Below the pieces are notes generated by a model. The model was given only the letters and a program-made list of their open reading frames with translations, was not told the DNA's origin and did not search any database. From IMG/VR virus record IMGVR_UViG_3300032322_001765, positions 1-64,000 of that record: 64,000 bases of DNA. One strand, given 5' to 3'. Position numbers and translations under genes: made by a program. This document shows, one piece after another, positions 8,165 to 62,835 of the stretch; position 1 is the stretch's first letter; every line of letters starts with the position of its first letter.

Positions 8165-8172
8165 TATAAATA
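8165..8172 (+). promoter_or_regulatory. T4-type late promoter box
   Basis: TATAAATA, 5 nt before ATG 8178. Confidence 0.7.
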
Positions 8173-32900: not shown

Positions 32901-35900
32901 GATCATTCCAAATATCGCTGTTTGTTGTAAACTGATCAGGATAACTTGGATAAACAGGATTTGTTGCAGAATAACTACTTCCGTAAAGCAGTTGAGGAGT
33001 AATAAATCTGCCCTCTGCGTCATCATAAATTGCTGGCAAATCATAATCAGTTATATTAGCGTTATATGGTTCATTTCTTGTATAGCGTAAATAAAAATCT
33101 TTAAACACAACATGATAAGGCTTCATCTCTGTTATATAACCTTCTAACAAAGATTGATTATCACGTTGAAATTTTTGATTAGTGGTTAATTCTCTTACAG
33201 TATAACCAACATCCGCAAAACTTGTTTTAGTTAACCAAGGTAAATAATTTTGTCCCTCTATATTTTCACTTTGAATATATTCAAATAATTTAGTTAAACT
33301 TACATTTCTATCCTTAAATAAAGGTCCTAAATAAATTTGTTCATTTAATGCACGGATTATATAGCGTGTTTCAGTTGAAGGGAATGCGTCGAACCCATTA
33401 CTATCAAAGCCTGTGCCAAACCCAGTGCCATATTTTTCATAATCCCATAAACTATCTAAAAAATGTATGGTGCCGTTTTGTAGACCTATTCTCACCCATT
33501 CAGAATTTTGATATATGTATACTTCTCTATTTCCCTGACTATTGCTTGCAACACCTACTATCATACCTTCAGTGGTAGGTAGTGTTAATAAATCCGTATA
33601 TATTGAAACTTCTAGTTCGGCTCTAGTGCTATCATCATATCCTTCGGCCCACCAATAAATGTTCGCCCAATAATTAGAAGTGTTTACAAAATCCCCTTGT
33701 ATACTTAAGAATGTAGTGTTACCAAATTCATTTACTGGATAAGCCTTTACTACAGTGTTAGCGTACTGTAGATATGTTTTTAACGCAGACAGTCTGTTTA
33801 CAAAAAAGCTTTGGCGAGGTCTTACGTTTATACCAGTTTGTAAAAGTTTAGGTACGGAATAATCAGGAACACTTGCACCTGTTTCATCCAATCCAGCAAA
33901 ACTATCTAACATTCTATCGTAAAGCCCAGTAGGGGTATTAAAACCTTTGTCAACATTTGGGAATCCTGGCAAAAAATCGTCTGGATAATTTGTTCTAATT
34001 AATTTGAAATCTAAATGACCAGTTGGACCATTTGCATTAGCACTATATCCTAAATGTAGATTAGTTGATGTGTCATTAATATATTCACTTGCATTGTAAA
34101 AAGCATAAACATTAGGTTCTAGTGATGCAAAAAATGCTACACCGGAATCTTTTGGATTAGCGATATATTGCTCTACAATTGTATCACTTAATGTTTTACC
34201 TATATTAGTTGAAATTATATTTGTATTTCTAACCCAATAATAATATTTTGCAACTAGATTATTGTTACTATCTGTGGTATACGCGGTAGAGTATTTTGCA
34301 GGATCATATGGTGTCCCATTTCCTGCATAGAAGAAAGGTAGTACATCACTTTCAATCCAAGTGTAAACTGTAACATCGCTTCCTTCAAATACTGTTCCCC
34401 AGTACTTACTATTATATTGATTATCATTTTGATGATAATTCATAAATCGTGATGAAGAAGGATTATACCATAATTTTCCAATATGACTATCAGTCCAAAC
34501 TATATTACCCACAGTATTATCAGGCGAATTGTATCCGGCAGGATCTGTAGGTGTTATGTAATCTATGTTTTCTGCGACAACACCCAATAATTTTCCTTGT
34601 AGAGGATCTATAAAATCTAATCCAGTTAAGGTTTCATTGTTTCTGTTATCATATAAAGAAACTTTTTGTATTTTTTCTACGTCAACTACAGGATTAGATT
34701 GTCTATATAAATGCCAATTAGATATCTGTGTTGAATTTTCAAAAACAAGTACTTTACCACCTAACGTTGTTGGTTGAAAGTTGGGGGAGCCTATAATTAC
34801 TACACCGTTATTAAACGACAATGCAGTTCCATATAAAGGTTGTGACCCGTAATTCTGATCTATATCATTCAATGACTGCGCATAAGCATATTTTCCAATA
34901 TTGGTTAAACTTTCATCATATGATTGAATATAATCATACATGTATGCGGCACCAGCATTACTGTTAGTATCTTCAAAAATAGTTAGATTGTTGTCAAATA
35001 CTGTATCATTATGTATGTTATTGTCATTTGAAAAATCAAAAGTAGTATTAATATATCTAATAGCGACCGGTGCACTTACAACAAAACTATTTTCTTCATT
35101 GTATCTTACTGCATAGCCAAATTGTGTTCTTGTTTGCTTGTGACTATCCTGAATTATTTGAGATTTGATATAATCAGTGAACCCCATCTCATATAAATAA
35201 TTCCCATTAAAAACACTAATGTTGAGTTTATTATTCATTGGTCCTAAATTAATATCTCTTAATCTAATAATTAAACGACCATCTTCTGTTGCATAAGCAA
35301 AAACGTTTGTTACACCTGCGCTGTTAATTGCACCAGCTAACGTAGCTGCGTTTCCAGCTGGCATATACACACGATAACCATTTATTAAAAGGTAAGTATC
35401 AGCAGTAAGATTAGCCGCAAGTAAACCAGTCATTGTGCCAAAACGCTTACCCTCATTAGTAAATCTATATACTGCACCTTCTGTTTGCACATTATTGATT
35501 ACATCAAATGGTGCACCAACTAATAATTCACTGCCAAAAGTGTTTGTATCGACCGAGAATCCAAACAACTCACCCTGTCTTAAGTCACCAGTATTATCGA
35601 ACCCGTATATTTGTTGTGTTAACACAAACTGGGCGCTGCTTATTGTAATGATATCTCCTGCAAATAAACCTATCGTACCTATAACAATAATGTTTACAAT
35701 TACAACATAATTGCTTGTTGACAGTAACTTCCCATTTACATATATTCGTGTTTGATTTGTAGGTTCGAAGGCTAATACGATAAGTAGCGGATCAGTAGGA
35801 CGTTGATCATATTGTACTTCAATATTTTCAATTAATCTGTCATACATATACACTACACCGGTATTTGTGAGTGTTATATCATAATCTGTATAAGGAGCAC

Positions 35901-38900
35901 CTACAAATAATTTACTACCGTCGTGATTTGTTGCTACGCTGAAACCAAATTTGTCTCCTATCTCTGCCATTGGGGGACTAATAGATCCAACTAAACTGAA
36001 ATTAACACTAGCAATAAAAATGTTTGAACCTGTAGTTGCTGTGTACTGAATTTGTTCTATCGTATAAAAAGTAGTTGTATTTGCAGAAACGTTATAAGTA
36101 CCAGTTATTACGGTTACTGAAGCATCATCACTAAATGTTACGGTGTAAATTGGTGATCCAGCTGCAATTGTACTATAAATCATTTCAACGGTATAGAACG
36201 TTGTTCTGTTAGTGCCTGGATCATATGCCTCATTGGCAATAGTATATAATCTAGAACTAATTGGTCCTGTGTTAGAAAATGCAACTTTATCACCGTGTGC
36301 TAACTTACTACGCTGGTCTCCTGAACATCTAAACAAATAAGTACCTTCTACTACAGTGAATAATGTTGTTGCGCCAATAGCACTATATGAAGTAACAAAA
36401 TTTACCATTTGTCCTTCGTTAATATAACTTAAGCGATTTCCTGATACAGTAAATTGTCTTTGATTTACAACGGTAGCTGTTGATAACGAAATACCTGCAC
36501 TTGAATATGTTAGAGTTTTATCTCTTTGAAATGCTAAAACTGTTTCGTCATTTTGTGCACCTAAATATAACAAGTTACTGTCACCTGAAATATCCATTGC
36601 ATCACCAACTCTACCTCCTGTGATAGATATGACTTGCTCTTGAATAATACTGTTTATTGTTCCGTTAGGTGGTATTCTATAAACAAAAATTTGGCTTATG
36701 ATATTATTTGGTTTAGAAACAATTAACAAATCATTACTGTAGACTATAGTTTTACCAAACTCCCCGCCGTTATTAATTGTATTCTTTAAGAAAAATACAC
36801 CATTAGGAGAAATATCATAGTGATATACTTTACCATCTCCTGAATCACCTATAAAATACCCAACGTTAGGTACATAAGCAACGCCTGAACCAAATGTGTT
36901 TGCGTCTAGTAATCCAGAATTTAAATTATTAAGTATATAGTTATTTGTTTTCTCATAAACTGCCCAGCTCCCGTCTACACCCCGATCTACCCAAACTTTA
37001 TTAACTGCATATTCTGCATTTAATAGTGGTAATGAATCGATATCACGGGCAGTATTTAATCTTTGGCTTTGCAGTAAATAAACTAATCCGTTTCCAAATA
37101 AGACATTAATTTGGCTATTTAAGTCTAGTGAAACTCTTATAGATTCTAATGATAATACATCTTCTACTTTATAAAAACCATTAACTACTACCTCAAAATT
37201 TAAAACAGCTATGAGTTGATTTTTCAGTAATCCATGTGGTTTTTGAAATACGAAGGTAACATTACCGTCTAAATTGTTATAGACTATGCGCAATTCTGAT
37301 TGAATTGACAACGGCGTATAAATTTGCCACGTGTTGTCTTTATCTGCTACCCAAATATAATCATTTTTGTAAATGTCTTGTAAGTCAATCGCTGCCAACC
37401 CTGCAATATTATAGGATTGTCCTCTAGTATCATCAATGTTTACATAACCTGCGCTGGCTAATTTTTCAGTATAACTATTTGATATTACCGGCAATATATC
37501 TGTTGATACCACCGATCTTCCATAATTTTTAAGATTATATAATGGAATGTTTTGTTGTATACCATTTGGCGCTACATTATCTGTGATACCTAAAATGCTT
37601 GGATTTCCTGTCAAATCATATTCATTGAGAGTTACCTCAATAAAATTCTGATTCATTAGTCCACCATATTCTCCTGTTTTTATAGCCCAGTTTTCATAAA
37701 TTTCATAATTTAATTGATTCTGTTGAATATTAACGCCCTGTAACTTAGTGACACTATCTACCGTACCCTTAGAAGTTATCATATTTTTATACAGGTTAAT
37801 TTGAGTACCGTCTGTAAAATTAGCGTCAGCGAAATACTGTCTTGGTCTAAATCCTATCAATGATGCACTTAATAAATCACCGTCATTCTCTAAATTTGGA
37901 TTAACAGTATTGTAGAACAAGGTGGCTTCATATGACCGTGTACTTGAATTTGGTAATAACCCTTTTTGAATATTATCATATGATGTCTTAGACCACTCAT
38001 TATAATCAAATTCGTTCTTTGGTAAAATAGTAACTTTATTCGCAATATAATAATCATTCTTGAATATGACTATCATACCTTTTACATACTTTACATTAGA
38101 TTGCCATTCTTGAATATTATCTTGATTTAAAATAAAACCGGCGGCATTTACCGTACCATTCCATTCCGCAGATTTTGTACCGGATACAAAAATTCTTTGT
38201 TGTCTTAGTCCTGTAATTAAGTTATAAATTACATCATTAAACACTGTGACGTTATCAAAAACGACAACATGTTCGATAGTACTAAGATTAGCAGTCATAA
38301 ATGCTATTGCGTCACCTTCGTTAAGTGCTTTGACACTAAACTCAGTTCCGTTTCTATAAACGAAAAGGTCTGTCAACGAAATAGGAATTAAGTTTTGATT
38401 TAAAACAAAATTGTCTTTAGTAAATGTAAGTGGTTGGACAATTGAATTTTCTTTGTTGATAACGACTGCTCTAGCATTAGGGTTAATATTAATCGTGCTT
38501 CCAAATTCCCAACCAGTGTCTACCCAATATAATAATTCATATATTATTTGGTCCCAGTTTAACTCTAACCCATTCTCAACGTTTTCAAATTTTACACCTT
38601 GTTCTTGTAAATATAATCCATATCCTCTTATAAAAGCACACAAATCATCTAATGTAGTATATTCATATCCGTAAGGTGTAGTTATTTTAATGTTAGTATA
38701 ATTTTTTGGAATTTTAACTACAGTTGTATCAATTTGAAACGTATCTAAAACACCATTATTATTTGGGGCAAAAGAAATAAAATAATTTTTATTTTGGCTG
38801 TTACCAAAAATTTTATATCCTTTAATAGTTTTTTGTACAATTATAGACCCATACGTAATTGTATCGATTGATTGATTTTCATATAATAATACACCAAAGC

Positions 38901-41900
38901 TTTCATCCGGAATTAATAAAGAATTATTTTTGCTGTTAGTAGATCCTTTTTCGACATAAAATTTAAGTAAGTCTTTATCACTAAATCCTGCTAATCTGTA
39001 TGACAATCTAACATCTAAATTTTGTACTAAATCAGTGATCGTAGTAGTTCCATCTACTCCAAATTGATATAGATAATCAACGATCCAGTTCACGTAACTG
39101 TGAGTTGCATTTCCATTACCATATACAGTTAGATTTGCTAAAGTTGTTCTAAATCTATTATTGTATAGGTACTGTTTAAATTCTTCATTATACTTGTACT
39201 TGTCTACATCAATTCCCAAACCAAACAGTTGCGCAGGTTTTAATAAAGCTGCGATACGTATTAAATCGAAGGGCCAATTTGAACTCTTTAAATATGCGTA
39301 TTCAGCAGGACCAACATCACCTGTAGCCCATAGCTTACCAAAATTACTTACATCATATGAACCTAATAAAAACTCAAAAGGATTTTTTAATTTTCCTAAA
39401 GTATCAACTGGTATAATATCTAATAAAGCAGGTCTAATTGCATTCTCATTGATATATGGATCACCGTTATTATAAACGTATCCAGCTGCAAGATCAGCCC
39501 ACAGGTAAGTATTATCGCTTGTATATGGTGCTACACCATACCGTTGTATCCACCAATCGGGTTGTTCGGAAAAACCTAACATTTCCCATGGTCTTGTATC
39601 TGGATTTGAAGTGTCATACAACCATAAATAAATCCCTCTCCAATTACCTTTTTGAATTTTTTTATTATTAAAATTAAAAGTGCTATCTTTATAATTATAC
39701 GTAAAGGGCTTTAAAGGATCATATAAATGTTCTTCATAATCAATTCTGTTTATTCCGACCCAATTCAAAAATTGATAGTTATAAATGGCTTGATATTCCT
39801 CATAGCTTATACCTATATTTCTAAACGCACCTGGCGTAACATCAAATTGAGTAATCGGGAGTTGAGAACTTATCTTTAAATTATTATAGATTCTTAATTC
39901 AAATTCCAATAATACTCTGTCACGATAATCACTTAGAACATTGTTATTGTAATTACCATAAAGTTTATTATAAGAACCGTCATGACCTACTAAGAAATAA
40001 GTAGGTGTAGAGTATGTGTTATCTAAAACTATTTTTGGAACACTGCTTGGGTATAGACCTAATTTAGTTGGCGTATTGGGAACATAACTTCCATAAGTTT
40101 GATAATATTCTTTAATCGTAATTATATCATCATTTTGTAAATCTTTAGTAATAGTTAAATTGGGTTCAGTTGGAGAAACTACATAATCAATATTTTTTAT
40201 TAATTGAAATGTTTCTACCTGATTAACGCTGTTGCGTCTTGTTAAATAAACCAAAACTCCATAGTAATTAGCACTGGTATAATCATAAACTCTACTTAAA
40301 TTGAAAATACTTGTATATAATTCAGTTTTGAATACATAATTGTTTGTGATATATGCATTTTTTGATGGCAACATATCAGACCAAAAGAATGGACTAGTAT
40401 CAACCTTTGAAATAGACAACTGATCTAATACATCATCTAAAATAAATGCTGGGGTTTGTAAAGGTGTATACTCGCCGTTGGTCAAAGTTTGTATCATTAA
40501 TCCTTTAAATTTACTGTACTCTAAAGAATTATAATTTAATGCATCAAAAAAATTATTATTAGTATTACGCAAGAATGTGGCGCAATTTACCAAAGAAGAA
40601 CTGTTTTGAATAATACGTGTACCGTATGGTACTATATTACCTAAATCCCTATAATTATTTGCTCCAAATGCAGGTCCTTGCAAATTAGGCACATTATTAC
40701 AAATACTCTTATAATGTCCTCTAACATCACCAAGGTTGATTGTAGTGATATTATCATTAAATGGATTATGGTCTAAATTCAAAGGTATTTGATAGTAACC
40801 TATTTTTGAAACTTGGTCACTATATAACATAATTGTTATTTGTTCCCCTAAAATTGGCTGCTCATTAAAAGTTACAGAGGTTGTAGTATTTGTTGTAGTA
40901 ACTGTATAGCCGGATGCCGACACTCTTTCATTATTTTTATATACAACAATTACAGGCCATTTAGTTGTTGCTTGATCTTTTACCTTAATATCGCATGTGA
41001 TTGCAGGATTCGCTGTTGTTCCGGTATATGTCGAATCAAATACTTGATATTGAAAACTATCTTCTATAGCTGTTTGCCATCCTATTAACCTGTCATATAA
41101 TACATTAGTTTTATATTGGTAAATATAACCATCAGAAACAGATTTAGTGACAACTTGTTGATTTTCAACATATGTAAAGTTTTGAGAGTTTAAAGAAACA
41201 TTAAATTGAATATCACTATAGTTACTATCCGAACTGTATTTTATAGGAAATAGTAGAACAGGATCATCCGCTCCTGTACCAATTGAGTATTCAAAAAGTG
41301 TACAGCCTGCAAAATCACTACCGTAGTAGAAGTCGTTGTCGCCGTAACTTATTCCATTTTTATCAAATAAATCAAACAACGGTGGTTGATTTACACGTGT
41401 TTTTAGTTGTGCTTCATGCCAATTATTTCCATCAAAATAGAAAGTCGTACCTGTATAATTTTCACCTAATGAAAATACTGTTTGTTCATTAATTAGTACC
41501 TCACCACCAGGTGCAATACTAAGTGTTATAACCGGTGTGCTAGTTCCTGTAACGGATTCAAGTTGTACTCTCCAAATTTTATTTCTAACCTCTAAATTTT
41601 CATCACCTGCAAATACTATAGTTGCACCATCGAATAATGCAGAGGTAGGACCGTCTGGAGCAAAACTTGTTTGTCCTGCTACCTGTGTAAAGGCATCTGT
41701 AACCGAAAAATTAATATAGTTAGTAGAAGTCCTTGCTATTGATCCTGAATTATATAATTTTAAGTTAGGGTAAAATTCAATAATAGGTCGCTTTGCTCTA
41801 TTATTGGGATTATTTAATGCTTCAACACTTATGGTACTTACTGGAGAATTAGCAATAACAGTGTTTAGTACGTCGATGTGGAACCAGCGATTTCCTCTAC

Positions 41901-44013
41901 TCCAGGAGTTTTTATCCAAACTGTTTCTAGCAATTACGATGTAATCTTGTTCCGATGGGTAAAAAAGTGTGTCACCAAAAGGATAAGTATCGTAGGGATT
42001 GGCATCATATGGTGTAGTTAATGGGGTACCAAATAGTTCAGGTGTTTGAAATTCGCTGTCTGGTATTAATTGAATACCTAAACCCACATTTTCAACATAG
42101 TATTGATCAGCTTTATATTTTTCAGGTACAATGTTTCCACTGAATATAACTTTTAATCCATTCGTAAAAGTAATTCCATTTGGGCTAGTATATTCTAACT
42201 TCCCTAAAATATCTTTTTCTACATCAATAAAATTATATTGAGGATTATCGACTAATTTAATTACACCCACACGCTGTGGATTAGTACCATCTTGATAGTA
42301 CAATGTATCGAGTGCCGCAGTTAATATAGGAACTAAGAATATTTCAGCATAAGAATTTTTTACAAAATTTCTACCTATATATGTAGCACCGTAGTTTATT
42401 GTAATTTTAGTGTTATCAGGTAATGCTCCTGCTTCTGTTAATCTTATTATAAAATCGTTATTACCTGCATTTATTAAATTTATTCTATAATAATTTTTAT
42501 TAATTTCAGTAGCTACTTGTTGTTCAAATAAACCTTGATCTATTGTTGCTGCCATTGAACCACTAGCTGTGACTAGTTGAACTTCGCTGCCGTTTGGTTC
42601 AGTGGAAATAGTAAATGCAGTATTACTAAGTATTTCTCTCACATAGTACATACCACCATAAAATGCAGCAGAGATTGTAGTTGCTGTATTAGCAGTAATG
42701 TCAACTTCTGGACCGCCCGGGGTCGCAGAAATTGTAAATTGCGTACTACTTACTACATTTTTTATATAGTATTGGGTTCTAGCCGTTATACCAGCAATAG
42801 TAGAACCAAAAGAAAGTGGCTGATTTGCAGAAAAACCCGTTGTATCAGAGGTTGTTAATCTATTGTTAGCTGCTGTTGTTGCAGAGACTATGAATGTTCT
42901 ACCATTGGTAACACCACCAAATACCGGTCCTGAAAAGTTAATACCTTCATTAACACGTAAGTTTGCTGTAGAGGCACAGATTAGCTCATTCTCTGTGGTG
43001 CTAGTATTAGTAGCCGTAATTGTAATTGTAGAGCTAGGTGTTAATGTAGGATTGTTTATATCATAATTTGTTGAGTCATAAAATTGACCAACGTAACCCA
43101 AACTGCTAGGTGTTGAACCATAGAATAGCAAAGTTTTATTATTTAAATTTGCTATACCATCAATACCTTTTAAATTAGATAATAACGCTCCGTTAATTTG
43201 ACTGAACGATTTGTCAGTAACTAAATCTATATCAAGATTACCTGGGTATAACCAATCGTTTTGTTCGTTCGCATATGGCACTTCAAACGTCATTATGCCT
43301 GATGATGTACCATTAAAATCTACACCATATATTTCACGTGTGCTTAAGTTGGGTCTTGCTGAATTTTTTCCGCTTATTCCTGGTTCAGTTTGAATCCAAA
43401 AAGGTGACTTACCATTTAGTACAAAACTATATGTGCCGCCTCTTATGAGTGTTAGTATTGGATTATCACCTTCTACAGGAATGCTGTCTGTTATAAAATT
43501 ATAACTAAAATTAAATAAAGACTCATCACCAACTTCTACATCATACGTGACGTTATTTCGTAGGGGCGCAGTAGTAACATTTAGTACATCAGGACCATTA
43601 GGAAGCCAAAAATATTGCGCATAGTTAACTAACTTATCTAAATTGCAAAAACTATCCCACGAATAGAATTGATTAGAAAAAAGATTATTGTTATTATCAA
43701 CACTGCCGTTTTGTAATTTTAACGCATCTAAAATTCCTGGATAAGTTATTAAGTCTACGGCTCTCGCTGTATCTTTTTTCTTAAAAACAACCGCAGGTTC
43801 TAGTTGATAGTCTCTACGAATTTTTGAGGTTTCAGCAAGATAGCTATCTCTAGATGAGATGCCATATCCAAATTTGCTACCTATATAACCTTCAATTCTT
43901 GTAAAATTAGGTTGTTGTACAAGTTGATCTAACGTAGCATCAAGAAATTGTTGATTAGTTTTTGTTTTGAAGACTTCAGGTAAGAAATCAATTGTTCTAA
44001 CTTTTGTTACCAT
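26929..44013 (-). CDS. Giant (5694 aa) baseplate wedge/receptor-binding protein, positional T4 gp7 equivalent
   Basis: Single 17 kb ORF directly after gp6. Contains FG-GAP-like repeats (FGFSV...LxVGAP), BNR/Asp-box-like repeats (AVG..G.I..S.NG..W), CBM5/12-like W...Y..G..V motifs and EM..YHV.F (gp7-like PYH motif). Confidence 0.7.
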   Translation of the reverse strand: MVTKVRTIDFLPEVFKTKTNQQFLDATLDQLVQQPNFTRIEGYIGSKFGYGISSRDSYLAETSKIRRDYQLEPAVVFKKKDTARAVDLITYPGILDALKLQNGSVDNNNNLFSNQFYSWDSFCNLDKLVNYAQYFWLPNGPDVLNVTTAPLRNNVTYDVEVGDESLFNFSYNFITDSIPVEGDNPILTLIRGGTYSFVLNGKSPFWIQTEPGISGKNSARPNLSTREIYGVDFNGTSSGIMTFEVPYANEQNDWLYPGNLDIDLVTDKSFSQINGALLSNLKGIDGIANLNNKTLLFYGSTPSSLGYVGQFYDSTNYDINNPTLTPSSTITITATNTSTTENELICASTANLRVNEGINFSGPVFGGVTNGRTFIVSATTAANNRLTTSDTTGFSANQPLSFGSTIAGITARTQYYIKNVVSSTQFTISATPGGPEVDITANTATTISAAFYGGMYYVREILSNTAFTISTEPNGSEVQLVTASGSMAATIDQGLFEQQVATEINKNYYRINLINAGNNDFIIRLTEAGALPDNTKITINYGATYIGRNFVKNSYAEIFLVPILTAALDTLYYQDGTNPQRVGVIKLVDNPQYNFIDVEKDILGKLEYTSPNGITFTNGLKVIFSGNIVPEKYKADQYYVENVGLGIQLIPDSEFQTPELFGTPLTTPYDANPYDTYPFGDTLFYPSEQDYIVIARNSLDKNSWSRGNRWFHIDVLNTVIANSPVSTISVEALNNPNNRAKRPIIEFYPNLKLYNSGSIARTSTNYINFSVTDAFTQVAGQTSFAPDGPTSALFDGATIVFAGDENLEVRNKIWRVQLESVTGTSTPVITLSIAPGGEVLINEQTVFSLGENYTGTTFYFDGNNWHEAQLKTRVNQPPLFDLFDKNGISYGDNDFYYGSDFAGCTLFEYSIGTGADDPVLLFPIKYSSDSNYSDIQFNVSLNSQNFTYVENQQVVTKSVSDGYIYQYKTNVLYDRLIGWQTAIEDSFQYQVFDSTYTGTTANPAITCDIKVKDQATTKWPVIVVYKNNERVSASGYTVTTTNTTTSVTFNEQPILGEQITIMLYSDQVSKIGYYQIPLNLDHNPFNDNITTINLGDVRGHYKSICNNVPNLQGPAFGANNYRDLGNIVPYGTRIIQNSSSLVNCATFLRNTNNNFFDALNYNSLEYSKFKGLMIQTLTNGEYTPLQTPAFILDDVLDQLSISKVDTSPFFWSDMLPSKNAYITNNYVFKTELYTSIFNLSRVYDYTSANYYGVLVYLTRRNSVNQVETFQLIKNIDYVVSPTEPNLTITKDLQNDDIITIKEYYQTYGSYVPNTPTKLGLYPSSVPKIVLDNTYSTPTYFLVGHDGSYNKLYGNYNNNVLSDYRDRVLLEFELRIYNNLKISSQLPITQFDVTPGAFRNIGISYEEYQAIYNYQFLNWVGINRIDYEEHLYDPLKPFTYNYKDSTFNFNNKKIQKGNWRGIYLWLYDTSNPDTRPWEMLGFSEQPDWWIQRYGVAPYTSDNTYLWADLAAGYVYNNGDPYINENAIRPALLDIIPVDTLGKLKNPFEFLLGSYDVSNFGKLWATGDVGPAEYAYLKSSNWPFDLIRIAALLKPAQLFGLGIDVDKYKYNEEFKQYLYNNRFRTTLANLTVYGNGNATHSYVNWIVDYLYQFGVDGTTTITDLVQNLDVRLSYRLAGFSDKDLLKFYVEKGSTNSKNNSLLIPDESFGVLLYENQSIDTITYGSIIVQKTIKGYKIFGNSQNKNYFISFAPNNNGVLDTFQIDTTVVKIPKNYTNIKITTPYGYEYTTLDDLCAFIRGYGLYLQEQGVKFENVENGLELNWDQIIYELLYWVDTGWEFGSTININPNARAVVINKENSIVQPLTFTKDNFVLNQNLIPISLTDLFVYRNGTEFSVKALNEGDAIAFMTANLSTIEHVVVFDNVTVFNDVIYNLITGLRQQRIFVSGTKSAEWNGTVNAAGFILNQDNIQEWQSNVKYVKGMIVIFKNDYYIANKVTILPKNEFDYNEWSKTSYDNIQKGLLPNSSTRSYEATLFYNTVNPNLENDGDLLSASLIGFRPRQYFADANFTDGTQINLYKNMITSKGTVDSVTKLQGVNIQQNQLNYEIYENWAIKTGEYGGLMNQNFIEVTLNEYDLTGNPSILGITDNVAPNGIQQNIPLYNLKNYGRSVVSTDILPVISNSYTEKLASAGYVNIDDTRGQSYNIAGLAAIDLQDIYKNDYIWVADKDNTWQIYTPLSIQSELRIVYNNLDGNVTFVFQKPHGLLKNQLIAVLNFEVVVNGFYKVEDVLSLESIRVSLDLNSQINVLFGNGLVYLLQSQRLNTARDIDSLPLLNAEYAVNKVWVDRGVDGSWAVYEKTNNYILNNLNSGLLDANTFGSGVAYVPNVGYFIGDSGDGKVYHYDISPNGVFFLKNTINNGGEFGKTIVYSNDLLIVSKPNNIISQIFVYRIPPNGTINSIIQEQVISITGGRVGDAMDISGDSNLLYLGAQNDETVLAFQRDKTLTYSSAGISLSTATVVNQRQFTVSGNRLSYINEGQMVNFVTSYSAIGATTLFTVVEGTYLFRCSGDQRSKLAHGDKVAFSNTGPISSRLYTIANEAYDPGTNRTTFYTVEMIYSTIAAGSPIYTVTFSDDASVTVITGTYNVSANTTTFYTIEQIQYTATTGSNIFIASVNFSLVGSISPPMAEIGDKFGFSVATNHDGSKLFVGAPYTDYDITLTNTGVVYMYDRLIENIEVQYDQRPTDPLLIVLAFEPTNQTRIYVNGKLLSTSNYVVIVNIIVIGTIGLFAGDIITISSAQFVLTQQIYGFDNTGDLRQGELFGFSVDTNTFGSELLVGAPFDVINNVQTEGAVYRFTNEGKRFGTMTGLLAANLTADTYLLINGYRVYMPAGNAATLAGAINSAGVTNVFAYATEDGRLIIRLRDINLGPMNNKLNISVFNGNYLYEMGFTDYIKSQIIQDSHKQTRTQFGYAVRYNEENSFVVSAPVAIRYINTTFDFSNDNNIHNDTVFDNNLTIFEDTNSNAGAAYMYDYIQSYDESLTNIGKYAYAQSLNDIDQNYGSQPLYGTALSFNNGVVIIGSPNFQPTTLGGKVLVFENSTQISNWHLYRQSNPVVDVEKIQKVSLYDNRNNETLTGLDFIDPLQGKLLGVVAENIDYITPTDPAGYNSPDNTVGNIVWTDSHIGKLWYNPSSSRFMNYHQNDNQYNSKYWGTVFEGSDVTVYTWIESDVLPFFYAGNGTPYDPAKYSTAYTTDSNNNLVAKYYYWVRNTNIISTNIGKTLSDTIVEQYIANPKDSGVAFFASLEPNVYAFYNASEYINDTSTNLHLGYSANANGPTGHLDFKLIRTNYPDDFLPGFPNVDKGFNTPTGLYDRMLDSFAGLDETGASVPDYSVPKLLQTGINVRPRQSFFVNRLSALKTYLQYANTVVKAYPVNEFGNTTFLSIQGDFVNTSNYWANIYWWAEGYDDSTRAELEVSIYTDLLTLPTTEGMIVGVASNSQGNREVYIYQNSEWVRIGLQNGTIHFLDSLWDYEKYGTGFGTGFDSNGFDAFPSTETRYIIRALNEQIYLGPLFKDRNVSLTKLFEYIQSENIEGQNYLPWLTKTSFADVGYTVRELTTNQKFQRDNQSLLEGYITEMKPYHVVFKDFYLRYTRNEPYNANITDYDLPAIYDDAEGRFITPQLLYGSSYSATNPVYPSYPDQFTTNSDIWNDPKYTEWYNNYGLSLGVIDNVIICNVGSFISNTDLQIIVDNAEGLPVTGTLKINNEFIGYTSVDRQRGIILGISRAINDSQAESHFAGTPIYINMPAVSVFNGSRDYVTPPTVTAFIDTTKYPAPKRQALLTSNLSGDKVVSINIIDAGEGYVVPPEIVFEPSVSYESSIERINFVGFSIQYLTTNLISGDLIYSTGITTNGYKLVPDGYYYIHNIDIFTTRTVVAFSLINAAVVTLHRTYDDALTGNNPVPFINQTLLEPTYTHRISLTAKAIPTMVSEKVRSIKPILKFDRTSYRSSITEWMPNTFYSSPYLSIGNDSSNTTKLFASVDSGERAPTGGSGNGAEFNIFNVLLGGTYYADIVTIGEDYVTGDVLTVQGTSLGGANATEQLEGTTVEGSSIIEMVNTTGISIGDYVTGFGIPYGAVVKSKTTNNNIMISEPATESGTGPLLFLTGNIPNNCLIVVEDIDGNGGITEISVYGVSNDASLSSLQGAVLPILDLDDVDGQAVVTLDYSYSDLKPGQINGSYMYFYKIHSSYIYDDTGKNFVGSITGTTLTVDVIEDGESLVVGDKVYNPNIIGSCEITAFGTGSGGAGTYTVSSVQTVTTSQMYTGGGALIRISRPKFNPDNINNLYYMEILNPGFIYNAGNTIIISGALLGGAPLVNDAKITIDIVSESNSIFNATIEGLSIGEFSQYYVKALDYDSSTQTGTIGVFENTLLTVPVSYSSFIWNGSGNNYGYLPEPIVNNYNYNYNTSSLVIYQGFIWQCIEANNDQEFNPSKWYPLLSSDNAINALDRIEAYYQPTVGMPGKDAQQLVKGITYPNNVYYGNSFAPEDEFPIDTVVQSLPFYPTGIDIKAITYDGTTFVAAGESSEASFILTLTQTGAWSSYEIASITLGITDIIYSGGAYIVVTTTTASPIYLSFDKSDWVSTGSVTGFDILGYDQGTFDTSQIGVGNVSLSSVINVNGVFYAVGGKILRSSTGITWDQVYDFTSPTFQNNLNDIAYVNNTTFVGFIVVGLTYQVTSGSGTSAPTVSTQSAILTSINGTVWSTITPSLTTNGFNSVTSSVSLNRIVIVGDAGVIYYSSNASNWVQASISGSPITTNIKSVVYGNSIFVAVGDKTGNGTSDPGLILTSVNGITWTQISSQYITTENLTYVYFADNFFYAVGENDTFLRSTNGSSWTDVSSISVDDPYYVVQGNDFLYGYGPEELVAGVVTDTLSMYVNTAPGAYWDIDFNSPIWYKHTGFNMQTKTGVPNYNLKLSFANLVVNPARLSVFIIGERVSDRGRRIYENQSSANLPYSYTVDWMEETITLNQSIPAGTYILIEVYEIGNGKELIRNNSKYYPLKQDEDTGQSYFDFNIEFTPVINEPLVCVSVSGGPLTKLEYNVDYLVIPDILGFTKILFITDTYDSATDYIVFSILGDSTSVFGSVQYGYSIPETEVFVTTGVTSSFQLNLELTTLSGNNVNNSIVEKNGERLFPAGVPGADYEFQNIGGTWYLHLFISVGGSGSDTIAVTTFYDTSRQYLTTNLFNGMSDGIKCTGISFVDISKTPVLLTFNSDPGFATNDLIRIDGVQGTTELNQMTFYINKVSATTYELFKDSSLGYPVIGPNLTGFVSGGYAWLDSETIIIPYPTVPGTMPNMTYDEGNRNWITIIENSAPLGSNGVRLLPTLTNYSTSALFTGSILGTTLTVANIDKGVLNIGQEIFGGNIASGTVITAYISGFGGIGTYEVNNSQTVSSVEMNTEYDNRLSLFTDTNVDDYILITSMVTGESPNPMSFNITVNKYGNGFVTRTNSTDGSWLTQDFISTDTTMYFYNVSNLVEPISTDLIVNDESGTIYTYVQCDINEVKGVQVYNKTTISTLASSQYGLTLFNGKPAVIFSSGVSVGDLVTVTITIGNVVEINGERIRFDVINTETNTLTGLTRGVQGTSTADTHSKYSIGYGINPARRITDAEYADTWNSETITSNGDPLQISVTDTAVFLQNNAPF

Positions 44014-55588: not shown

Positions 55589-55617
55589 TTGCAATTCTGT
55601 CAACGTTATACTATACT
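55589..55617 (+). promoter_or_regulatory. sigma70-type promoter for the gp55-like gene
   Basis: TTGCAA (55589-55594)-17-TATACT (55612-55617). Confidence 0.7.
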
Positions 55618-55642
55618 TTTCACAACAAATTTACGGAGAACT

Positions 55643-56530
55643 ATGAGCCTCACACCAAAAAAACCTGTCAATTATTTGAATAATAAAGACATTTTAAAAG
55701 AGATACACTACAGTAAAAACACCTATTGTAGCTATAAAAACCCAGAAAAAGATCACAAATATGATTTAATAATCGATCACCCAAATGATCCATTGAAAAA
55801 ATGCTTTGATTTTTGTCTGAAGCGTGATGCTTTAAAACAGGCTAAAGAAAATCGGGCAGCTAGAATATTTGTAGAAACAGGGGAAAAAGTGGATATTAAA
55901 AATATCCCAGAAACTGATTTGGTGTTTAGAATCATGACCTGGGATCATATACCTGTGGCTCCTAAGCAACCTAGAAAGGTAGATAAAAAGAAAACTGCAA
56001 AGGATATATTCGATTTTGAAGATGATACTGAAACTTTTGAGGATTTAGAAGATGTATCCGGCGGCGATATCGACGATATGGTACATGTCAAAGTTAATTT
56101 TCCTCCGTTTCAACATTTTAGAATGGATAAAAATAGAACCTTTCGTTGTATAGGCAAAAGCCATTGGATGGGAAATATGACTGATGGTGAATTTAGCAAA
56201 GAACACGGAAACATCACTGACAAACTAGCACGTATGTACATTATGATGTGTGAAAAATATGCCATGAAATTTAATTGGCGTGGGTACACATATAATGATG
56301 AAATGCGTAATAGTGCTATTCTTCAATTAACCTACGTAGGGTTGCGATTTAACGAAGCCAAATCTCAAAACCCATTTGCATATTATACGGCAGCAATTAC
56401 CAATAGTTTTTGCCGTGTACTAAACAGTGAAAAACGTAATCAAAACATACGTGATGACATATTAGAAATAAATGGATTAAATCCTAGTTGGACTCGTCAA
56501 GGTCAAGTTAGCATGTCATACGAAGAATAA
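55643..56530 (+). CDS. Late-transcription sigma factor, T4 gp55-like
   Basis: NYLNNKD, NW.GYTY..EM...A, F...KS.NPFAY.T....NSF.R....EK. GGAG RBS before ATG 55643. Located directly upstream of gp47/gp46 as in T4. Confidence 0.85.
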   Translation: MSLTPKKPVNYLNNKDILKEIHYSKNTYCSYKNPEKDHKYDLIIDHPNDPLKKCFDFCLKRDALKQAKENRAARIFVETGEKVDIKNIPETDLVFRIMTWDHIPVAPKQPRKVDKKKTAKDIFDFEDDTETFEDLEDVSGGDIDDMVHVKVNFPPFQHFRMDKNRTFRCIGKSHWMGNMTDGEFSKEHGNITDKLARMYIMMCEKYAMKFNWRGYTYNDEMRNSAILQLTYVGLRFNEAKSQNPFAYYTAAITNSFCRVLNSEKRNQNIRDDILEINGLNPSWTRQGQVSMSYEE

Positions 56531-59348: not shown

Positions 59349-59851
59349 ATACTTTATACCTTGATATGGACGGGGTTGTTGCAGATTTTGATGCTTATGC
59401 TTATAATACATTAGGTTTAGGTCCTTCAGAAGGTATATATCCAAATAGTGAATGGGAAAAGTTACGCAGCAATCCTAGACTCTACAGAGATTTAGAAAAA
59501 ACACCTTACGCAGATGAATTAGTGTTTCAATGTAGTGTTTTTGCAAAACGTAATAATTTTAATTTAAAGTTTTTAACAGCAGTACCAAAAGATAATGATT
59601 TACCTTGGGCTTTCTATGACAAGTTTAAATGGGTAGAAAAGAACGGTTTTAGTAATATTCCTATCATGTTTGGCCCTTATAGTAAAGACAAACATATGCA
59701 TTGTAAAACTGGTGATATCTTAATTGATGATAGAACTAGTAACATTGAAGAATGGATAGCAGCAGGTGGATATGGTATATTACATAGAACAAGTTATGAA
59801 CATACATTAGAGGAGTTATTCAATTATGAAAATATTATTAACAGGTCATAA
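59345..59851 (+). CDS. 5'(3')-deoxyribonucleotidase, HAD superfamily
   Basis: LDMDGVVADF and ILIDD...NI.EW...GG. Confidence 0.85.
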   Translation: MNTLYLDMDGVVADFDAYAYNTLGLGPSEGIYPNSEWEKLRSNPRLYRDLEKTPYADELVFQCSVFAKRNNFNLKFLTAVPKDNDLPWAFYDKFKWVEKNGFSNIPIMFGPYSKDKHMHCKTGDILIDDRTSNIEEWIAAGGYGILHRTSYEHTLEELFNYENIINRS

Positions 59852-60647
59852 AGGTTTCATTGGTCAAAATATGCTTAAGTATCTCCAATCTAATACAGAT
59901 TGGTCTATTGATACATATGACATTAAAGATGAATTCCAAGGGGTCATGTCTTATGACTGGGTAATTCATTTAGGTGCAGTAACAAGTACAACCGAAAAAA
60001 ACTTAGATAAAGTTTTAACTCAAAATTATGAGTTTTCTAAAAATCTGTTTGACGAATGCAAAACGTTTGGGGTGAATTTACAATATGCTAGTTCTGCTAG
60101 TGTATATGGACAAAATTTAGAATTTACAGAAGAAAGTCCATTAGATCCAATAACTCCGTACGCATGGTCAAAATATCTTTTCGAGCGACACGCCTCAAAT
60201 AATATGGGAGGTAATATAGTTCAAGGGTTTAGGTATTTTAACGTTTATGGAAAGCACGAAGATCATAAAGAAGGTCAGTCCAGTCCTATTCATCAGTTTA
60301 CAAAACAAGCTAAAACAAACGGAAAAATAAAGATTTTTGATGATAGTCATAAAATGTTTAGAGATTTTATTTGTGTTGATGATGTTTGTAGAGTACAGAT
60401 TGAGTTTATTAAAAGCGTTAAAGAATCAGGCATTTGGAATTTAGGCACAGGTAGGCCGACTAGTTTTGAGAAAGTTGCCGAATATATCAAAGATATATAT
60501 GGCGGAAAGTTAAAGTATGCTATGATGCCAGATCAGTTACAGAGAAGTTATCAATATTATACATGCAGTGATAATACCAAATTAGAAAATACCATTGGCA
60601 AGCAGAGTTGGATAAAAATTAAAGATTTTTTAAAACAAGACAAGTAA
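59826..60647 (+). CDS. hldD: ADP-L-glycero-D-manno-heptose 6-epimerase-like (extended SDR)
   Basis: TGHKGFIG, HLGA..STTE, YASSASVYG, YAWSK, FRYFNVYG..E.HK and RDFICVDDV. Confidence 0.75.
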   Translation: MKILLTGHKGFIGQNMLKYLQSNTDWSIDTYDIKDEFQGVMSYDWVIHLGAVTSTTEKNLDKVLTQNYEFSKNLFDECKTFGVNLQYASSASVYGQNLEFTEESPLDPITPYAWSKYLFERHASNNMGGNIVQGFRYFNVYGKHEDHKEGQSSPIHQFTKQAKTNGKIKIFDDSHKMFRDFICVDDVCRVQIEFIKSVKESGIWNLGTGRPTSFEKVAEYIKDIYGGKLKYAMMPDQLQRSYQYYTCSDNTKLENTIGKQSWIKIKDFLKQDK

Positions 60648-60661: not shown

Positions 60662-61222
60662 ATGCCAAGTCCACAAAAAGCAAAAGGTTCAAGTTTTGAA
60701 AGAGAAATTGCGAAATTTCTTTCAGAATTATACGGAGAAAGTTTTATACGTGCCCCAGGGTCCGGAGCGTATGTGGGCGGTACAAATCAAAGCAGGAAGC
60801 AATTTTTACACGAAGGTCAAATTCGCAGTTTTAAGGGAGACATTGTTCCAGGACAAAGTTTTTCTAAATTTAATGCGGAGTGTAAGAGTTATAAAGACTT
60901 CCCATTTCACTTATTACTTACGGGTGAGAACAAACAATTTGACCAATGGATAGCACAAATGATAGAAGTATCAGACCAAGATGATTTTAATATTCTTTTT
61001 ATGAAGTTTAATCGCATTGGTAAGTTCGTAGCAGTACAACCAAAATTTACATGGGTGTTAGATAATTATACTTTTTATTCAAGTAAAACGGTTGGTGATT
61101 GGATACTTACAGAATTTGATAGCTTTTTCAAAAACAACAAAGACTTAGTTAAAAATTACTCAGGCTCAATAGACACAACGTCACAATCTCAAAATTTAAC
61201 GAATTTACAATTAGCCGACTGA
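60662..61222 (+). CDS. Holliday-junction resolvase-like PD-(D/E)xK nuclease (Hjc-type)
   Basis: K.KG..FER.IA.., R.P.SG, GDI and ECKSY. Confidence 0.7.
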   Translation: MPSPQKAKGSSFEREIAKFLSELYGESFIRAPGSGAYVGGTNQSRKQFLHEGQIRSFKGDIVPGQSFSKFNAECKSYKDFPFHLLLTGENKQFDQWIAQMIEVSDQDDFNILFMKFNRIGKFVAVQPKFTWVLDNYTFYSSKTVGDWILTEFDSFFKNNKDLVKNYSGSIDTTSQSQNLTNLQLAD

Positions 61223-61680
61223 GTTGTCAGTCCTCCTTGAGGAAGTACAGGTAGTGCTGTGCCGACGGATCTGGAGTATACATGTCAGTAATGACATGGA
61301 ATGTCGAGAGGGCAATCTTTGTTAGGGAACCCTCAATGAGTTTGTATCTTACTCTGTTTTGCGGATACAAAACATGCGTTGCCGAAGAGCTAAATGAAAA
61401 AATAAGTTTAGTAGCTTCACTACAGTCCCATTATACTTACAGGGCAACCGACGGCGTATAGCAACTAAAAGTGTTAGCTATTCGGGGAATAAACAGCAAG
61501 TGGATGACGGGCATGGCAAGTTTCCAATTGGTAGTGCTGAATAGCACTACCATGGCTTCAAAGCGGCAATATATAAGCCCTAAAGAAAAGTTTTCGAAAG
61601 TTATAACAGTCAATAAAATTCCGAACAATGCGAACGTAGTGAGCATGTGAAGGAATTAGATGAACGAAGTTCATCTTTTA
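61217..61680 (+). ncRNA. Candidate large structured non-coding RNA (unassigned)
   Basis: About 460 nt with no credible ORF, visibly GC-richer than flanks, and at least eight nested helices including CATGTCA-GTAA-TGACATG (GNRA loop on +). Ends in a terminator-like hairpin. Confidence 0.6.
61658..61680 (+). terminator. Terminator-like hairpin
   Basis: AGATGAAC-GAA-GTTCATCT followed by TTTA. Confidence 0.55.
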
Positions 61681-61734
61681 ATAATTCTAATAATATTAAT
61701 GGTAATCCTAAGTTATGATAATGAATATCTACGG

Positions 61735-61911
61735 TTAGAAGAAAGGTAACTTTGTGTTCTTTGTTGTTTCTAAGTTTTCTTCTATTAAATTGCCGATGGC
61801 TTGTCTTTCCTTAAATGACATATTGAGTATGTCTATATAAGATGCCCCACCCCTCATATACCATGCCATTTTTAATGCATTGGCTTTAATGGCTTCACAA
61901 TCTTTTTCCAT
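61735..61911 (-). CDS. T4 gp51-like hub/tail assembly chaperone segment (58 aa from ATG; -1 frame open back to 61971; not in ORF track)
   Basis: MEKDCEAIKANALKMAWYMRGGASYIDILNMSFKERQAIGNLIEENLETTKNTKLPFF. No RBS before its ATG. Confidence 0.7.
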   Translation of the reverse strand: MEKDCEAIKANALKMAWYMRGGASYIDILNMSFKERQAIGNLIEENLETTKNTKLPFF

Positions 61912-61921
61912 ATCGTCTATT

Positions 61922-61971
61922 AACTTCTGAACCTCATCGGGGGCTAGGGCCAGAAGTCTTAGACGAAAAAA
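61922..61971 (-). promoter_or_regulatory. Putative -1 programmed ribosomal frameshift element
   Basis: Slippery T-TTT-TTC (61971-61965), 6-nt spacer containing the frame-0 stop, then a stem GACTTCTG...CAGAAGTT. Confidence 0.7.
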
Positions 61972-62783
61972 TCAGATATGTTTAGATCAAATGGTTGTTC
62001 GTAATTGTGGCTACAACTTGGACAAGTAAATGCTAAAGGTTTAGCTTCAGTTGTTTTTCTTAGATTAATACTTTGGTCTTTGATGTTATCATATTCTTTC
62101 TTTGGTATATTTTCTAAGAACTCTTTTATGTACTCTTTTTCAATGACTACGCTTTCAGGAGTTTTGACATATTCTACAATTTCTAATATCAATTCTGTTG
62201 CAATCTCATTCATTTCTTTTACCAACTCAGACATTTTATTTTCTTTGTCAGCACCTTCTTCCATTTTTGATATTATTCCATATGCTCTTTGTAAGTCAAA
62301 TTGTTTTTGACTGTTCTCATTTACTTTTGTATATGTCAATGGTTTAAATTTTATTTGCACATCGTTGTACACTGGATAAAGTTTGTTATAATCCCCTGGA
62401 CTGAATTCATTAAGCATTCCAGTTAAATTTACATCGTATTTGGCGTCGTGATTGCAATTTGGGCATACAGTTAAAATTTCCATAGTAGACCCATTAGTTG
62501 CAATTTTAATTGCTAGAAGAATAGGATCTAAATCAATTTGTAGTAATTGCCATGGGTCTTTGATATTTGGTGCGCAACTGTGAATAATTTCAACTACTGC
62601 TTGGCCATTAAAAAGTGCATCTGGTGTGCGTGTGGTAATTTCGTCTAATGCAGTCATGGGAAAAATTGGTATCTCCCCTGACTCCGGTAAATCAATGGCA
62701 TTTTCTTTATATCCTATGCCTTTGCTAGGTAATTTCAAATATAATGCAGGTTTACGAAAATAACTTTTTAGTGGGTTAGACAT
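61959..62783 (-). CDS. T4 gp26-like baseplate hub/tail assembly chaperone
   Basis: NPLKSYFRKPALYLKLPS.G, MTA.DE, two CPxC motifs, C-terminal DFF. GGAG RBS before ATG 62783. Confidence 0.75.
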   Translation of the reverse strand: MSNPLKSYFRKPALYLKLPSKGIGYKENAIDLPESGEIPIFPMTALDEITTRTPDALFNGQAVVEIIHSCAPNIKDPWQLLQIDLDPILLAIKIATNGSTMEILTVCPNCNHDAKYDVNLTGMLNEFSPGDYNKLYPVYNDVQIKFKPLTYTKVNENSQKQFDLQRAYGIISKMEEGADKENKMSELVKEMNEIATELILEIVEYVKTPESVVIEKEYIKEFLENIPKKEYDNIKDQSINLRKTTEAKPLAFTCPSCSHNYEQPFDLNISDFFV

Positions 62784-62816
62784 TTTTTCTCCAAAATTTG
62801 ACAGTAATTTTTCAAC

Positions 62817-62835
62817 TAAATACAAGATATTTATA
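62817..62835. promoter_or_regulatory. Divergent late promoter boxes
   Basis: TAAATA on + (62817-62822) and TATAAATA on - (62835-62828), between the chaperone and tape-measure genes. Confidence 0.55.

Follow-up and report, generated by a model that had tools for sequence, protein, structure and literature searches.

A large noncoding RNA with two predicted pseudoknots, found at a conserved genomic position in uncultured T4-like phages

What is encoded in the long gap between two converging genes of an uncultured T4-like phage? We analysed a stretch of 64,000 nucleotides (positions 1 to 64,000 of IMG/VR record IMGVR_UViG_3300032322_001765, hereafter the window). A sequence-only reading had proposed that positions 61217-61680 encode a novel structured RNA of about 460 nt, listing ten helices and stating that the region could not be assigned to tmRNA, RNase P or a group I/II intron. 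We asked whether this structure is real, whether it belongs to a known family, and what it may do.

Genomic context and distribution

The candidate lies in a gap of 512 nt between converging genes. The flanking genes are as follows.

60662..61222, + strand: PDDEXK_15/RusA-like putative resolvase, the last ORF of a + strand block (gp55 late sigma, gp47, gp46, nucleotidase, epimerase, PDDEXK).
61735..62825, - strand: converging genes, a 58-aa ORF with no family match (61735-61911) and a gp26-like baseplate hub (61959-62825) with TATAAATA just upstream.

The G+C content of the region is 0.40-0.44, against 0.29-0.39 on both sides, and the minimum free energy z-scores are -3.2 for the + strand and -3.7 for the - strand. 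Four of the roughly 46 distinct perfect hairpins of at least 7 bp present in the window lie in this 0.7% of it.

We next searched for homologues, using the nearly invariant hairpin P10 (see below) as a search handle. The same element, about 410-560 nt in length, was found in at least 120 IMG/VR contigs and at least 120 metagenome contigs, from related lake and ocean phages. It lies between a PDDEXK endonuclease gene and a converging pair formed by a small ORF and the gp26 baseplate hub. The PDDEXK gene is upstream of the RNA on the same strand in essentially every locus with enough sequence, the exception being a locus (L177) which keeps the RNA with a GIY-YIG-like ORF in place of PDDEXK. Only one copy was detected in the window. 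In contrast, no DNA match was found in 50,697 phage records, and the PDDEXK homologues of the cultured phages PA5oct and SCTP-2 are followed directly by other genes. A scan of 185,579 prokaryotic genomes with the P10 pattern hit two MAG contigs, neither of which carries the RNA or its flanking genes. More distant phages carry different RNAs in the same slot, with the same 5' and 3' modules but another core (sister classes, the element described here being class 1). The core model found no further copy in sister-class loci or in the rest of the window.

Predicted secondary structure

In order to test the proposed fold, we aligned 98 distinct copies of the element (median identity 66%). Compensatory changes support about 12 helices and two pseudoknots, and 48 of the 70 pairs predicted by RNAalifold are compensated. 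The resulting model, read from the + strand, comprises the following parts.

61217..61232, +: P1, 5' hairpin (6 bp, 4-nt loop), which overlaps the PDDEXK stop codon in this window.
61233..61276, +: P2 (CUCC 61233-36 with GGAG 61273-76), enclosing hairpin P3 (61245-50/61257-62, closing pair 61241/61266) and the invariant joiners UUGA and GGAUCU.
61281..61298, +: P4 hairpin (7 bp, GUAA loop), variable in length among homologues.
61302..61453, +: core multi-helix junction closed by the long-range helix P5 (61302-06/61449-53) and containing P6 (61308-12/30-34), P6a (61316-18/26-28), P7 (61336-38/73-75 plus 61341-48/64-71), P8 (61378-83/61443-48) and P8a (61384-87/61415-18, tandem G.A, 61390-94/61407-11).
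61354..61359, +: 5' strand of pseudoknot PKA, in the P7 loop, pairing with 61491-96.
61418..61442, +: conserved single strand inside P8 (ACUACAG ... UUACAG), holding the 5' strand of pseudoknot PKB (61426-29).
61456..61483, +: P9 hairpin (61456-65/61473-83, one bulge).
61485..61496, +: 3' strands of PKB (61485-88) and PKA (61491-96), tying the P8 internal loop to the P7 loop.
61501..61519, +: conserved single strand GGAUGACGGxCAUGGCAA, carrying position 61511.
61529..61552, +: P10, 10-bp hairpin nearly invariant in sequence.
61553..61571, +: conserved single strand UGGCUUCAAAxCGGCAAU, carrying position 61563.
61572..61616, +: variable A-rich linker, conserved neither in length nor in sequence.
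61617..61657, +: P11, long hairpin with two tandem sheared G.A steps (61623-24/61649-50 and 61632-33/61641-42) and a GNA/GNRA-type loop.
61658..61680, +: P12, terminal 8-bp hairpin with a GAA loop and a U-rich tail, probably the 3' end or terminator (inferred).

In the 150-nt core, 98.5% of cells are paired and 24 of 30 pairs are compensated. None of 500 shuffles reached this level, and slid controls gave only 30-38% of paired cells. PKA, represented by 24 haplotypes, is 97% paired, again with 0 of 500 shuffles reaching this value and with 35-51% in slid controls. For PKB, the pair 61426/61488 reads UA in 66 copies, AU in 10, CG in 7 and GC in 6. All six pairs of P1 show at least two Watson-Crick types, and P3 also covaries. 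In P9, 9 of 10 pairs covary, 98% are paired, and 99 G-U were counted against 3 A-C. In P12, 7 of 8 pairs covary and 99% are paired. The inner two base pairs of P11 read AC/GU, GC/GC or GU/AC. This hairpin is shared with the sister classes, and it is the only match to its tandem-G.A loop pattern in the window. P2 is invariant in class 1, but reads CCCA/UGGG and CACC/GGUG in sister-class loci. This led us to reject the possibility that the conserved CCUCCU is an anti-Shine-Dalgarno mimic. An alternative pairing of UUGCCG with CGGCAA (61566-71) is not supported by covariation, as judged by eye in the alignment, whereas the P8 pairing is supported.

Eight of the ten helices of the sequence-only reading were thus upheld by homologues: 61217-22/27-32, 61281-87/92-98, 61308-12/30-34, 61341-48/64-71, 61378-83/61443-48, the GAAG...CTTC arm with its tandem G.A, 61529-38/43-52 and 61658-65/69-76. 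The helix 61529-38/43-52 is almost invariant (only the loop-closing pair 61538/61543 switches between U-A and A-U) and is therefore supported mainly by conservation. Two helices were not upheld. The 3' arm of TCCTC/GAGGA (61231-43) varies freely, CUCC 61233-36 pairing instead with GGAG 61273-76. In the case of TATTC/GAATA (61479-91), 61477-83 is the 3' arm of P9 and 61485-88 is in a pseudoknot. The long-range helix P5, the two pseudoknots and the P11 hairpin had been missed.

We also noticed that positions 61511 and 61563 always carry the same base (GG 63, UU 16, CC 13, AA 2), with about 15 coordinated switches on the tree. We looked for a protein that could read this pair, but no residue of PDDEXK, the 58-aa ORF or gp26 tracks it.

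To determine on which strand the structure is constrained, we compared G-U with A-C in the well-aligned helices. G-U outnumber A-C by 250 to 33, which puts the RNA on the + strand. Hairpins would also form in single-stranded DNA, and GCGAAGC-type mini-hairpins may well exist in DNA. However, the G-U asymmetry, the long-range helices and the two pseudoknots make a DNA-level element (packaging site, origin, or recombination hotspot with hairpins or cruciforms) very unlikely. We then tested whether the region could be a protein-coding gene or pseudogene. The period-3 power of substitutions is 1.5 times the median, against 203 times in the PDDEXK control, although column entropy is similar (0.89 against 0.80 bits), the RNA being conserved about as well as the neighbouring protein gene. 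Copy lengths fall in all three classes modulo 3, and the longest stop-free stretches (median 71 aa over six frames) are about what chance gives by a rough estimate. These results reject the coding reading.

Search for known RNA families

A search of the whole window against Rfam 15 (including GOLLD, ROOL, OLE, HEARO, raiA, tmRNA, RNase P, group I/II introns, T-box, 6S and pRNA) gave no hit at gathering score. At E<=10, positions 61000-62000 gave only three chance-level partial matches (E 5-9) to unrelated small-RNA families, and none to any large-RNA, tmRNA, RNase P or intron model. At E<=1, nothing was found within the element of 27 related loci, the single match lying about 1 kb upstream of the gap. 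ARAGORN did not detect any tRNA or tmRNA in the window, including permuted forms. The 5' and 3' ends do not pair, and there is no conserved tag frame. A group I intron would require flanking exons of one gene, but the genes on the two sides converge, so there is no split gene. The statement that the region cannot be assigned to tmRNA, RNase P or introns stands on Rfam and ARAGORN. Resemblances to tmRNA (GAUUCUGGA), RNase P (ACAG...CCGG), the T-box (GGUACCG) and Y RNA (GGUAGUG) are short, of chance size and unsupported by the models. No description of this RNA was found in the literature, although overlap with the candidate structured RNAs catalogued from IMG/VR (Fremin et al. 2023, PMC10690425) could not be checked. 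These 8,495 candidates average 67 nt and may include single hairpins of this RNA; no full-length model of about 460 nt is described.

Possible functions

Taken together, the covariation, strand asymmetry and lack of codon-like substitution indicate that 61217-61680 (+ strand) is a noncoding, structured RNA gene, although there is no transcript evidence of any kind. The RNA may be made either from its own A/T-rich late-type promoter just 5' of P1 or by read-through of the gp55-gp47-gp46-PDDEXK block, and we infer that it ends at P12. An A/T-rich motif sits before P1 in a third to a half of members, and TATAAATA late promoters are used in this phage. However, the motif is absent or different in many members and is a weak match in the window itself, and consensus scans called neither a promoter nor a terminator at the ends of the RNA.

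No gene follows the RNA on its strand, and many unpaired nucleotides and one whole stem (P10) are fixed in sequence. This suggests that the RNA acts in trans, as the folded subunit or scaffold of a phage ribonucleoprotein, and not as a cis-regulator. We consider a stand-alone gene with such a role to be somewhat more likely than not. No protein partner was identified, and the ribonucleoprotein reading rests on exclusion and on analogy with other large conserved RNAs. A search for antisense targets in the window revealed only chance-level 12-15-mers, the longest of which lies in the same sense as the local mRNA. A cis-acting 3' UTR or insulator, stabilising the upstream mRNA or preventing collision of the converging transcription units, would fit the position of the element and its terminal hairpin with a U-rich tail. 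However, a terminator needs one hairpin, whereas this is a 460-nt fold with pseudoknots and fixed unpaired bases, and the ordinary terminator of this phage (847-878) looks different. We regard this possibility as very unlikely.

A role as guide or cofactor RNA of the adjacent nuclease was suggested by the position of the RNA, which starts 2-113 nt after the PDDEXK gene on the same strand in nearly all loci. This also appears very unlikely, since L177 keeps the RNA without PDDEXK, PA5oct and SCTP-2 have PDDEXK homologues without such a gap, no PDDEXK residue tracks the variable RNA position, no terminal variable guide segment is evident and HEARO does not match.

The density of invariant single-stranded nucleotides and the two pseudoknots clamping the core resemble large ribozymes, raising the possibility of a catalytic centre, for example for processing the RNA out of the operon transcript or for acting on another RNA. 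However, no Rfam ribozyme, intron or RNase P model matches even weakly, no exons or substrate are evident, and the sister classes have different cores. We consider this reading unlikely. A replication-primer RNA, forming a persistent hybrid with its template, perhaps at the A-rich linker that follows the folded core, would be consistent with the location at the end of a recombination and replication gene block and next to the baseplate-hub genes; oriF of T4 appears to lie beside genes 25 and 26. Against this, no DNA unwinding element, iterons or skew switch was found beyond what the change in gene orientation gives, T4 origin transcripts are not known to need such a fold, and the 3' module and terminal hairpin are conserved as RNA structure. 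We consider this role improbable.

An RNA-only assembly of the GOLLD/ROOL/OLE kind is the leading alternative, although still unlikely. GOLLD and ROOL were found to be multimers by cryo-EM (bioRxiv 10.1101/2024.12.08.627333). PKA and PKB are loop-to-strand pairings that could form in trans, and one or both of them, or the same-base pair 61511/61563, may be contacts between copies. In addition, the invariant palindrome CCAUGG follows P10, and the same-base rule is tracked by no residue of the three neighbouring proteins. However, our data do not distinguish pairing within a copy from pairing between copies. On a more speculative view, which we consider less likely than not, the RNA would be the founding member of a phage-specific superfamily of large RNAs filling one fixed genomic slot in a whole lineage of uncultured T4-like large phages. 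Its cores would diversify (class 1 and at least one or two sister classes) while the 5' and 3' modules stay shared, and it would work as a ribozyme or a self-assembling RNA machine during infection. It would also contain a so far undescribed tertiary contact requiring two distant bases to be identical, for example a short parallel-stranded motif or a contact between copies.

Relation to known systems

Large, highly conserved structured RNAs are rare, and the few known classes (ribosomal RNAs, RNase P, tmRNA, group I and II introns, OLE, GOLLD, ROOL) each turned out to do something fundamental or structurally unprecedented. The RNA described here is of that size and complexity, and its alignment is suited to structure determination. 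Like GOLLD and ROOL, it is several hundred nucleotides long, with many helices, pseudoknots and conserved unpaired bases, is carried by phages, and is known only from comparative genomics, without a known function. However, it has no sequence or covariance-model similarity to them, is not next to tRNA genes, and occurs in uncultured freshwater and marine T4-like large myoviruses and not in Lactobacillales or rumen bacteria. It shares with tmRNA and RNase P RNA a similar size, pseudoknots, long-range helices and conserved joiners, but lacks a tRNA-like end pairing and matches neither model. The phi29 pRNA is also a phage-encoded structured RNA, acting in trans as part of a protein machine, as we infer for the RNA described here, and showing loop-loop pairing that covaries. 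It is however only about 120-174 nt, belongs to phi29-like podoviruses and gives no model match, and no link to the packaging genes was seen here. The omega RNA/HEARO of IscB and TnpB is likewise a large structured RNA immediately beside a nuclease gene on the same strand. In our case the nuclease is a PDDEXK resolvase-like protein, not RuvC/HNH, RNA and nuclease each occur without the other, and no transposon ends are present. Finally, ColE1 RNA II and the T4 origin transcripts are also structured transcripts of about 500 nt next to replication genes, but there is no evidence of hybrid formation or of an origin here, and the fold of the phage RNA is far more conserved and is pseudoknotted.

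Genomic context and composition of the intergenic region

Window positions 61223-61734 form a 512-nt gap between converging genes. Upstream on the + strand lies a gene for a 186-aa PDDEXK_15 / RusA-like putative resolvase, the last ORF of a block made of the gp55 late sigma factor, gp47, gp46, a 5'-nucleotidase, a sugar epimerase and PDDEXK. Downstream on the - strand are a 58-aa ORF with no family match and a gp26-like baseplate hub. The gene content and the use of TATAAATA motifs before late genes mark a T4-like myovirus, and the source contig is a 220-kb IMG/VR genome. The T4 late-promoter motif TATAAATA occurs at positions 8165 (+), 13642 (-), 47945 (-) and 62835 (-). It lies just upstream of three ORF starts (8178 +, 47919 - and 62825 -), while the copy at 13642 lies about 56 nt upstream of the start at 13586. 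This fits the gp55-like sigma factor encoded at 55589-56530. Elsewhere in the window, a single 5,694-aa ORF of 17 kb (26929-44013, - strand) lies among the tail and baseplate genes and presumably encodes a giant fibre or adhesin-like structural protein. A Nol-like carbamoyltransferase, an auxiliary metabolic gene inside a run of minus-strand genes (12102-13586, - strand), together with the NAD-dependent epimerase at 59826-60647, hints at sugar or surface modification by the phage.

The G+C content of the gap rises to 0.40-0.44, against 0.29-0.39 around it. Both strands folded better than shuffled sequences, with z-scores of -3.2 and -3.7, and four of the roughly 46 distinct perfect hairpins of at least 7 bp in the 64-kb window fall in this 0.7% of it. 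Since single-sequence folding proves little on its own, we next collected homologues.

A family of intergenic elements at a fixed genomic position

Loci anchored by tblastn searches with the two flanking proteins showed that about 50 of them carry the intergenic sequence at 66-89% nucleotide identity. Metagenome contigs with the element came mostly from lakes, with some marine contigs and one TARA contig. In every IMG/VR hit of sufficient length the whole element was present, whereas hits cut by a contig end held the corresponding part. This gave 98 distinct full-length copies of about 410-560 nt, with a median pairwise identity of 66%. Synteny is essentially invariant: PDDEXK is followed 2-113 nt later by the RNA on the same strand, then by the converging 58-aa ORF and gp26. 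The flanking proteins are 56-82% (PDDEXK) and 33-63% (gp26) identical to those of the window. A scan of one genome for each of 185,579 prokaryotic species with the pattern of the conserved hairpin P10 gave only 2 chance hits, and no DNA match was found in 50,697 cultured-phage records. The nearest cultured PDDEXK homologues (below 45% identity; PA5oct, SCTP-2) have no such gap.

The element is a noncoding RNA of the + strand

In order to test for conserved structure, we applied RNAalifold to 32 diverse copies, which predicted 70 pairs, 48 of them with compensatory changes. A covariance model of the 150-nt core was then used to realign all 98 copies. On that alignment 98.5% of cells are standard pairs and 24 of 30 pairs have double changes. 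No shuffle in 500 reached the observed pairing or covariation score, and sliding the partners by 1-3 columns reduced pairing to 30-38%. In the well-aligned helices G-U outnumbers A-C by 250 to 33, as expected only if the + strand is the folded strand, and we consider a DNA-level element very improbable. Column entropy revealed no 3-base periodicity, with 1.5 times the median power, against 203 times for 450 nt of the adjacent PDDEXK gene aligned in the same way. Mean entropy is similar (0.89 against 0.80 bits), indicating that the element is about as constrained as a protein gene but is not one. Copy lengths fall in all three classes mod 3, and by a rough estimate stop-free stretches are about what chance gives.

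Predicted secondary structure and pseudoknots

The following features were identified on the + strand (window coordinates).

61217-22/27-32: P1.
61233-36/61273-76: P2, CUCC with GGAG, enclosing hairpin P3 (61245-50/57-62) and invariant joiners.
61281-87/92-98: P4.
61302-06/61449-53: P5, a long-range helix closing a junction that holds P6, P7 and P8.
61308-12/30-34: P6, with P6a.
61336-38/73-75 and 61341-48/64-71: P7, in which 11 of 11 pairs covary.
61378-83/61443-48: P8, with its arm P8a (61384-87/61415-18, tandem G.A, 61390-94/61407-11).
61456-65/61473-83: P9.
61485-88/61426-29: pseudoknot PKB, formed by the strand after P9 with the P8 internal loop.
61491-96/61354-59: pseudoknot PKA, formed by the strand after P9 with the P7 loop.
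61529-38/43-52: P10, a nearly invariant 10-bp hairpin between two conserved single strands.
61572-61616: variable A-rich linker.
61617-57: P11, a long hairpin with two tandem G.A steps.
61658-65/69-76: P12, the terminal hairpin, with 7 of 8 pairs covarying and a U-rich tail.

PKA has 24 distinct haplotypes, almost all of them fully complementary. It is 97% paired, a value reached by no shuffle in 500, while slid controls gave 35-51%. Of the ten helices proposed in the sequence-only reading, eight stand. The TCCTC/GAGGA helix fails because GAGGA is not conserved and CUCC belongs to P2, and the TATTC/GAATA helix fails because its arms belong to P9 and PKB. We also noted an exact 10-nt direct repeat, GGTAGTGCTG, at 61250-61259 and 61530-61539. 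One copy is the loop and 3' side of P3 and the other the 5' arm of P10, so that the P3 copy could compete for the P10 3' arm, although only a subset of homologues keeps the P3 copy.

Same-base covariation on either side of P10

Positions 61511 and 61563, located in the two conserved single strands on either side of P10, carry the same base: G/G 63, U/U 16, C/C 13, A/A 2, and only 4 mixed. On a tree built without these columns, each position changes 15-16 times and the pair state changes 16 times, indicating that the two switched together about 15 independent times. No third column is complementary to them, and no residue of PDDEXK, the 58-aa ORF or gp26 follows them. Read in parallel register, the neighbours give G.A, N.N, C.C and A.G, which suggests, by inference only, a short parallel-stranded or symmetric contact. 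This tertiary signal is so far unexplained.

Sister classes with a different core

More distant loci, with PDDEXK about 60% identical, keep a 400-520-nt gap in the same slot (loci L035-L077 and L358-L437 of our collection, for example L037:3502-3962). These gaps were matched by nhmmer only at the 5' module (P1-P3) and at the 3' module (the GA hairpin plus the terminal hairpin). The middle is different, strongly conserved in its own right, and not found by the class-1 core model. One class-2 motif alone hits at least 119 IMG/VR contigs, and a third group was noted (L068, L071, L075, L076). In these RNAs P2 reads CCCA/UGGG or CACC/GGUG, which both supports P2 and rules out an anti-Shine-Dalgarno role for CCUCC. 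In both classes a GUUG.../...CAACCG helix interleaved with a G-run/C-run helix could be seen by eye, and they may therefore share a pseudoknotted core topology.

Expression and possible function

We infer that the RNA is expressed from an A/T-rich late-type motif just 5' of P1, or by read-through. The motif is present in about a third to a half of members and is weak in the window. In one subgroup (about 20 of 95 homologues, e.g. loci L166, L160, L057) a conserved ACAGAACCC motif lies instead 31-48 nt before the CUCC of P2, and may be an alternative promoter or a 5' extension of the RNA. Termination at P12 is likewise inferred. The ordinary terminator of this phage looks different: a perfect 14-bp G+C-cored hairpin at 847-878, flanked by A and T runs, resembles a bidirectional intrinsic terminator. 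The GA-hairpin pattern of the 3' module occurs nowhere else in the window. A role restricted to that of a cis 3' UTR or insulator appears unlikely.

The element is a conserved, independently folding + strand RNA with a clamped double-pseudoknot core, sequence-fixed elements and no cis target, and we are highly confident that it is a real structured RNA gene. That it acts in trans as the RNA subunit or scaffold of a phage RNP is an inference, and this reading as a whole, including its mode of expression and termination, is only somewhat more likely than not. An RNA-only multimer of the GOLLD/ROOL kind is a less likely possibility, a ribozyme slightly less likely again, and a replication-primer RNA doubtful.

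Comparison with known RNAs

A search of the window with Rfam 15 (4,227 models) gave nothing at gathering score. At E<=10 the region gave only three chance-level partial matches to unrelated small RNAs. At E<=1 nothing was found within the element of 27 related loci of both classes, the single match there lying about 1 kb upstream of the gap. Literature searches found no description of this RNA, although the IMG/VR catalogue of short candidates (mean 67 nt; PMC10690425), with which overlap could not be assessed, may contain fragments of it. The observation of a structured region is confirmed, and its interpretation in the sequence-only reading as a novel ~460-nt structured RNA is supported. No known family fits, so we rate it as a new class, of interest for its size, conservation, fixed genomic slot, sister classes and same-base covariation.

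ARAGORN detected no tRNA or tmRNA, and the ends of the element do not pair, as they would in tmRNA or RNase P. There is no split gene, as would be needed for an intron. The possibility of a nuclease guide was considered because of the adjacent PDDEXK gene. However, in one class-1 locus (L177) a 147-aa GIY-YIG-like (Seg-type homing endonuclease) ORF (L177:6718-7161) sits where PDDEXK normally is, with two further small ORFs between gp46 and it, while the RNA and the downstream genes are unchanged. Conversely, the cultured phages PA5oct and SCTP-2 have the nuclease without the RNA. The nuclease-guide idea fails on both counts, and we regard a PDDEXK cofactor as improbable.
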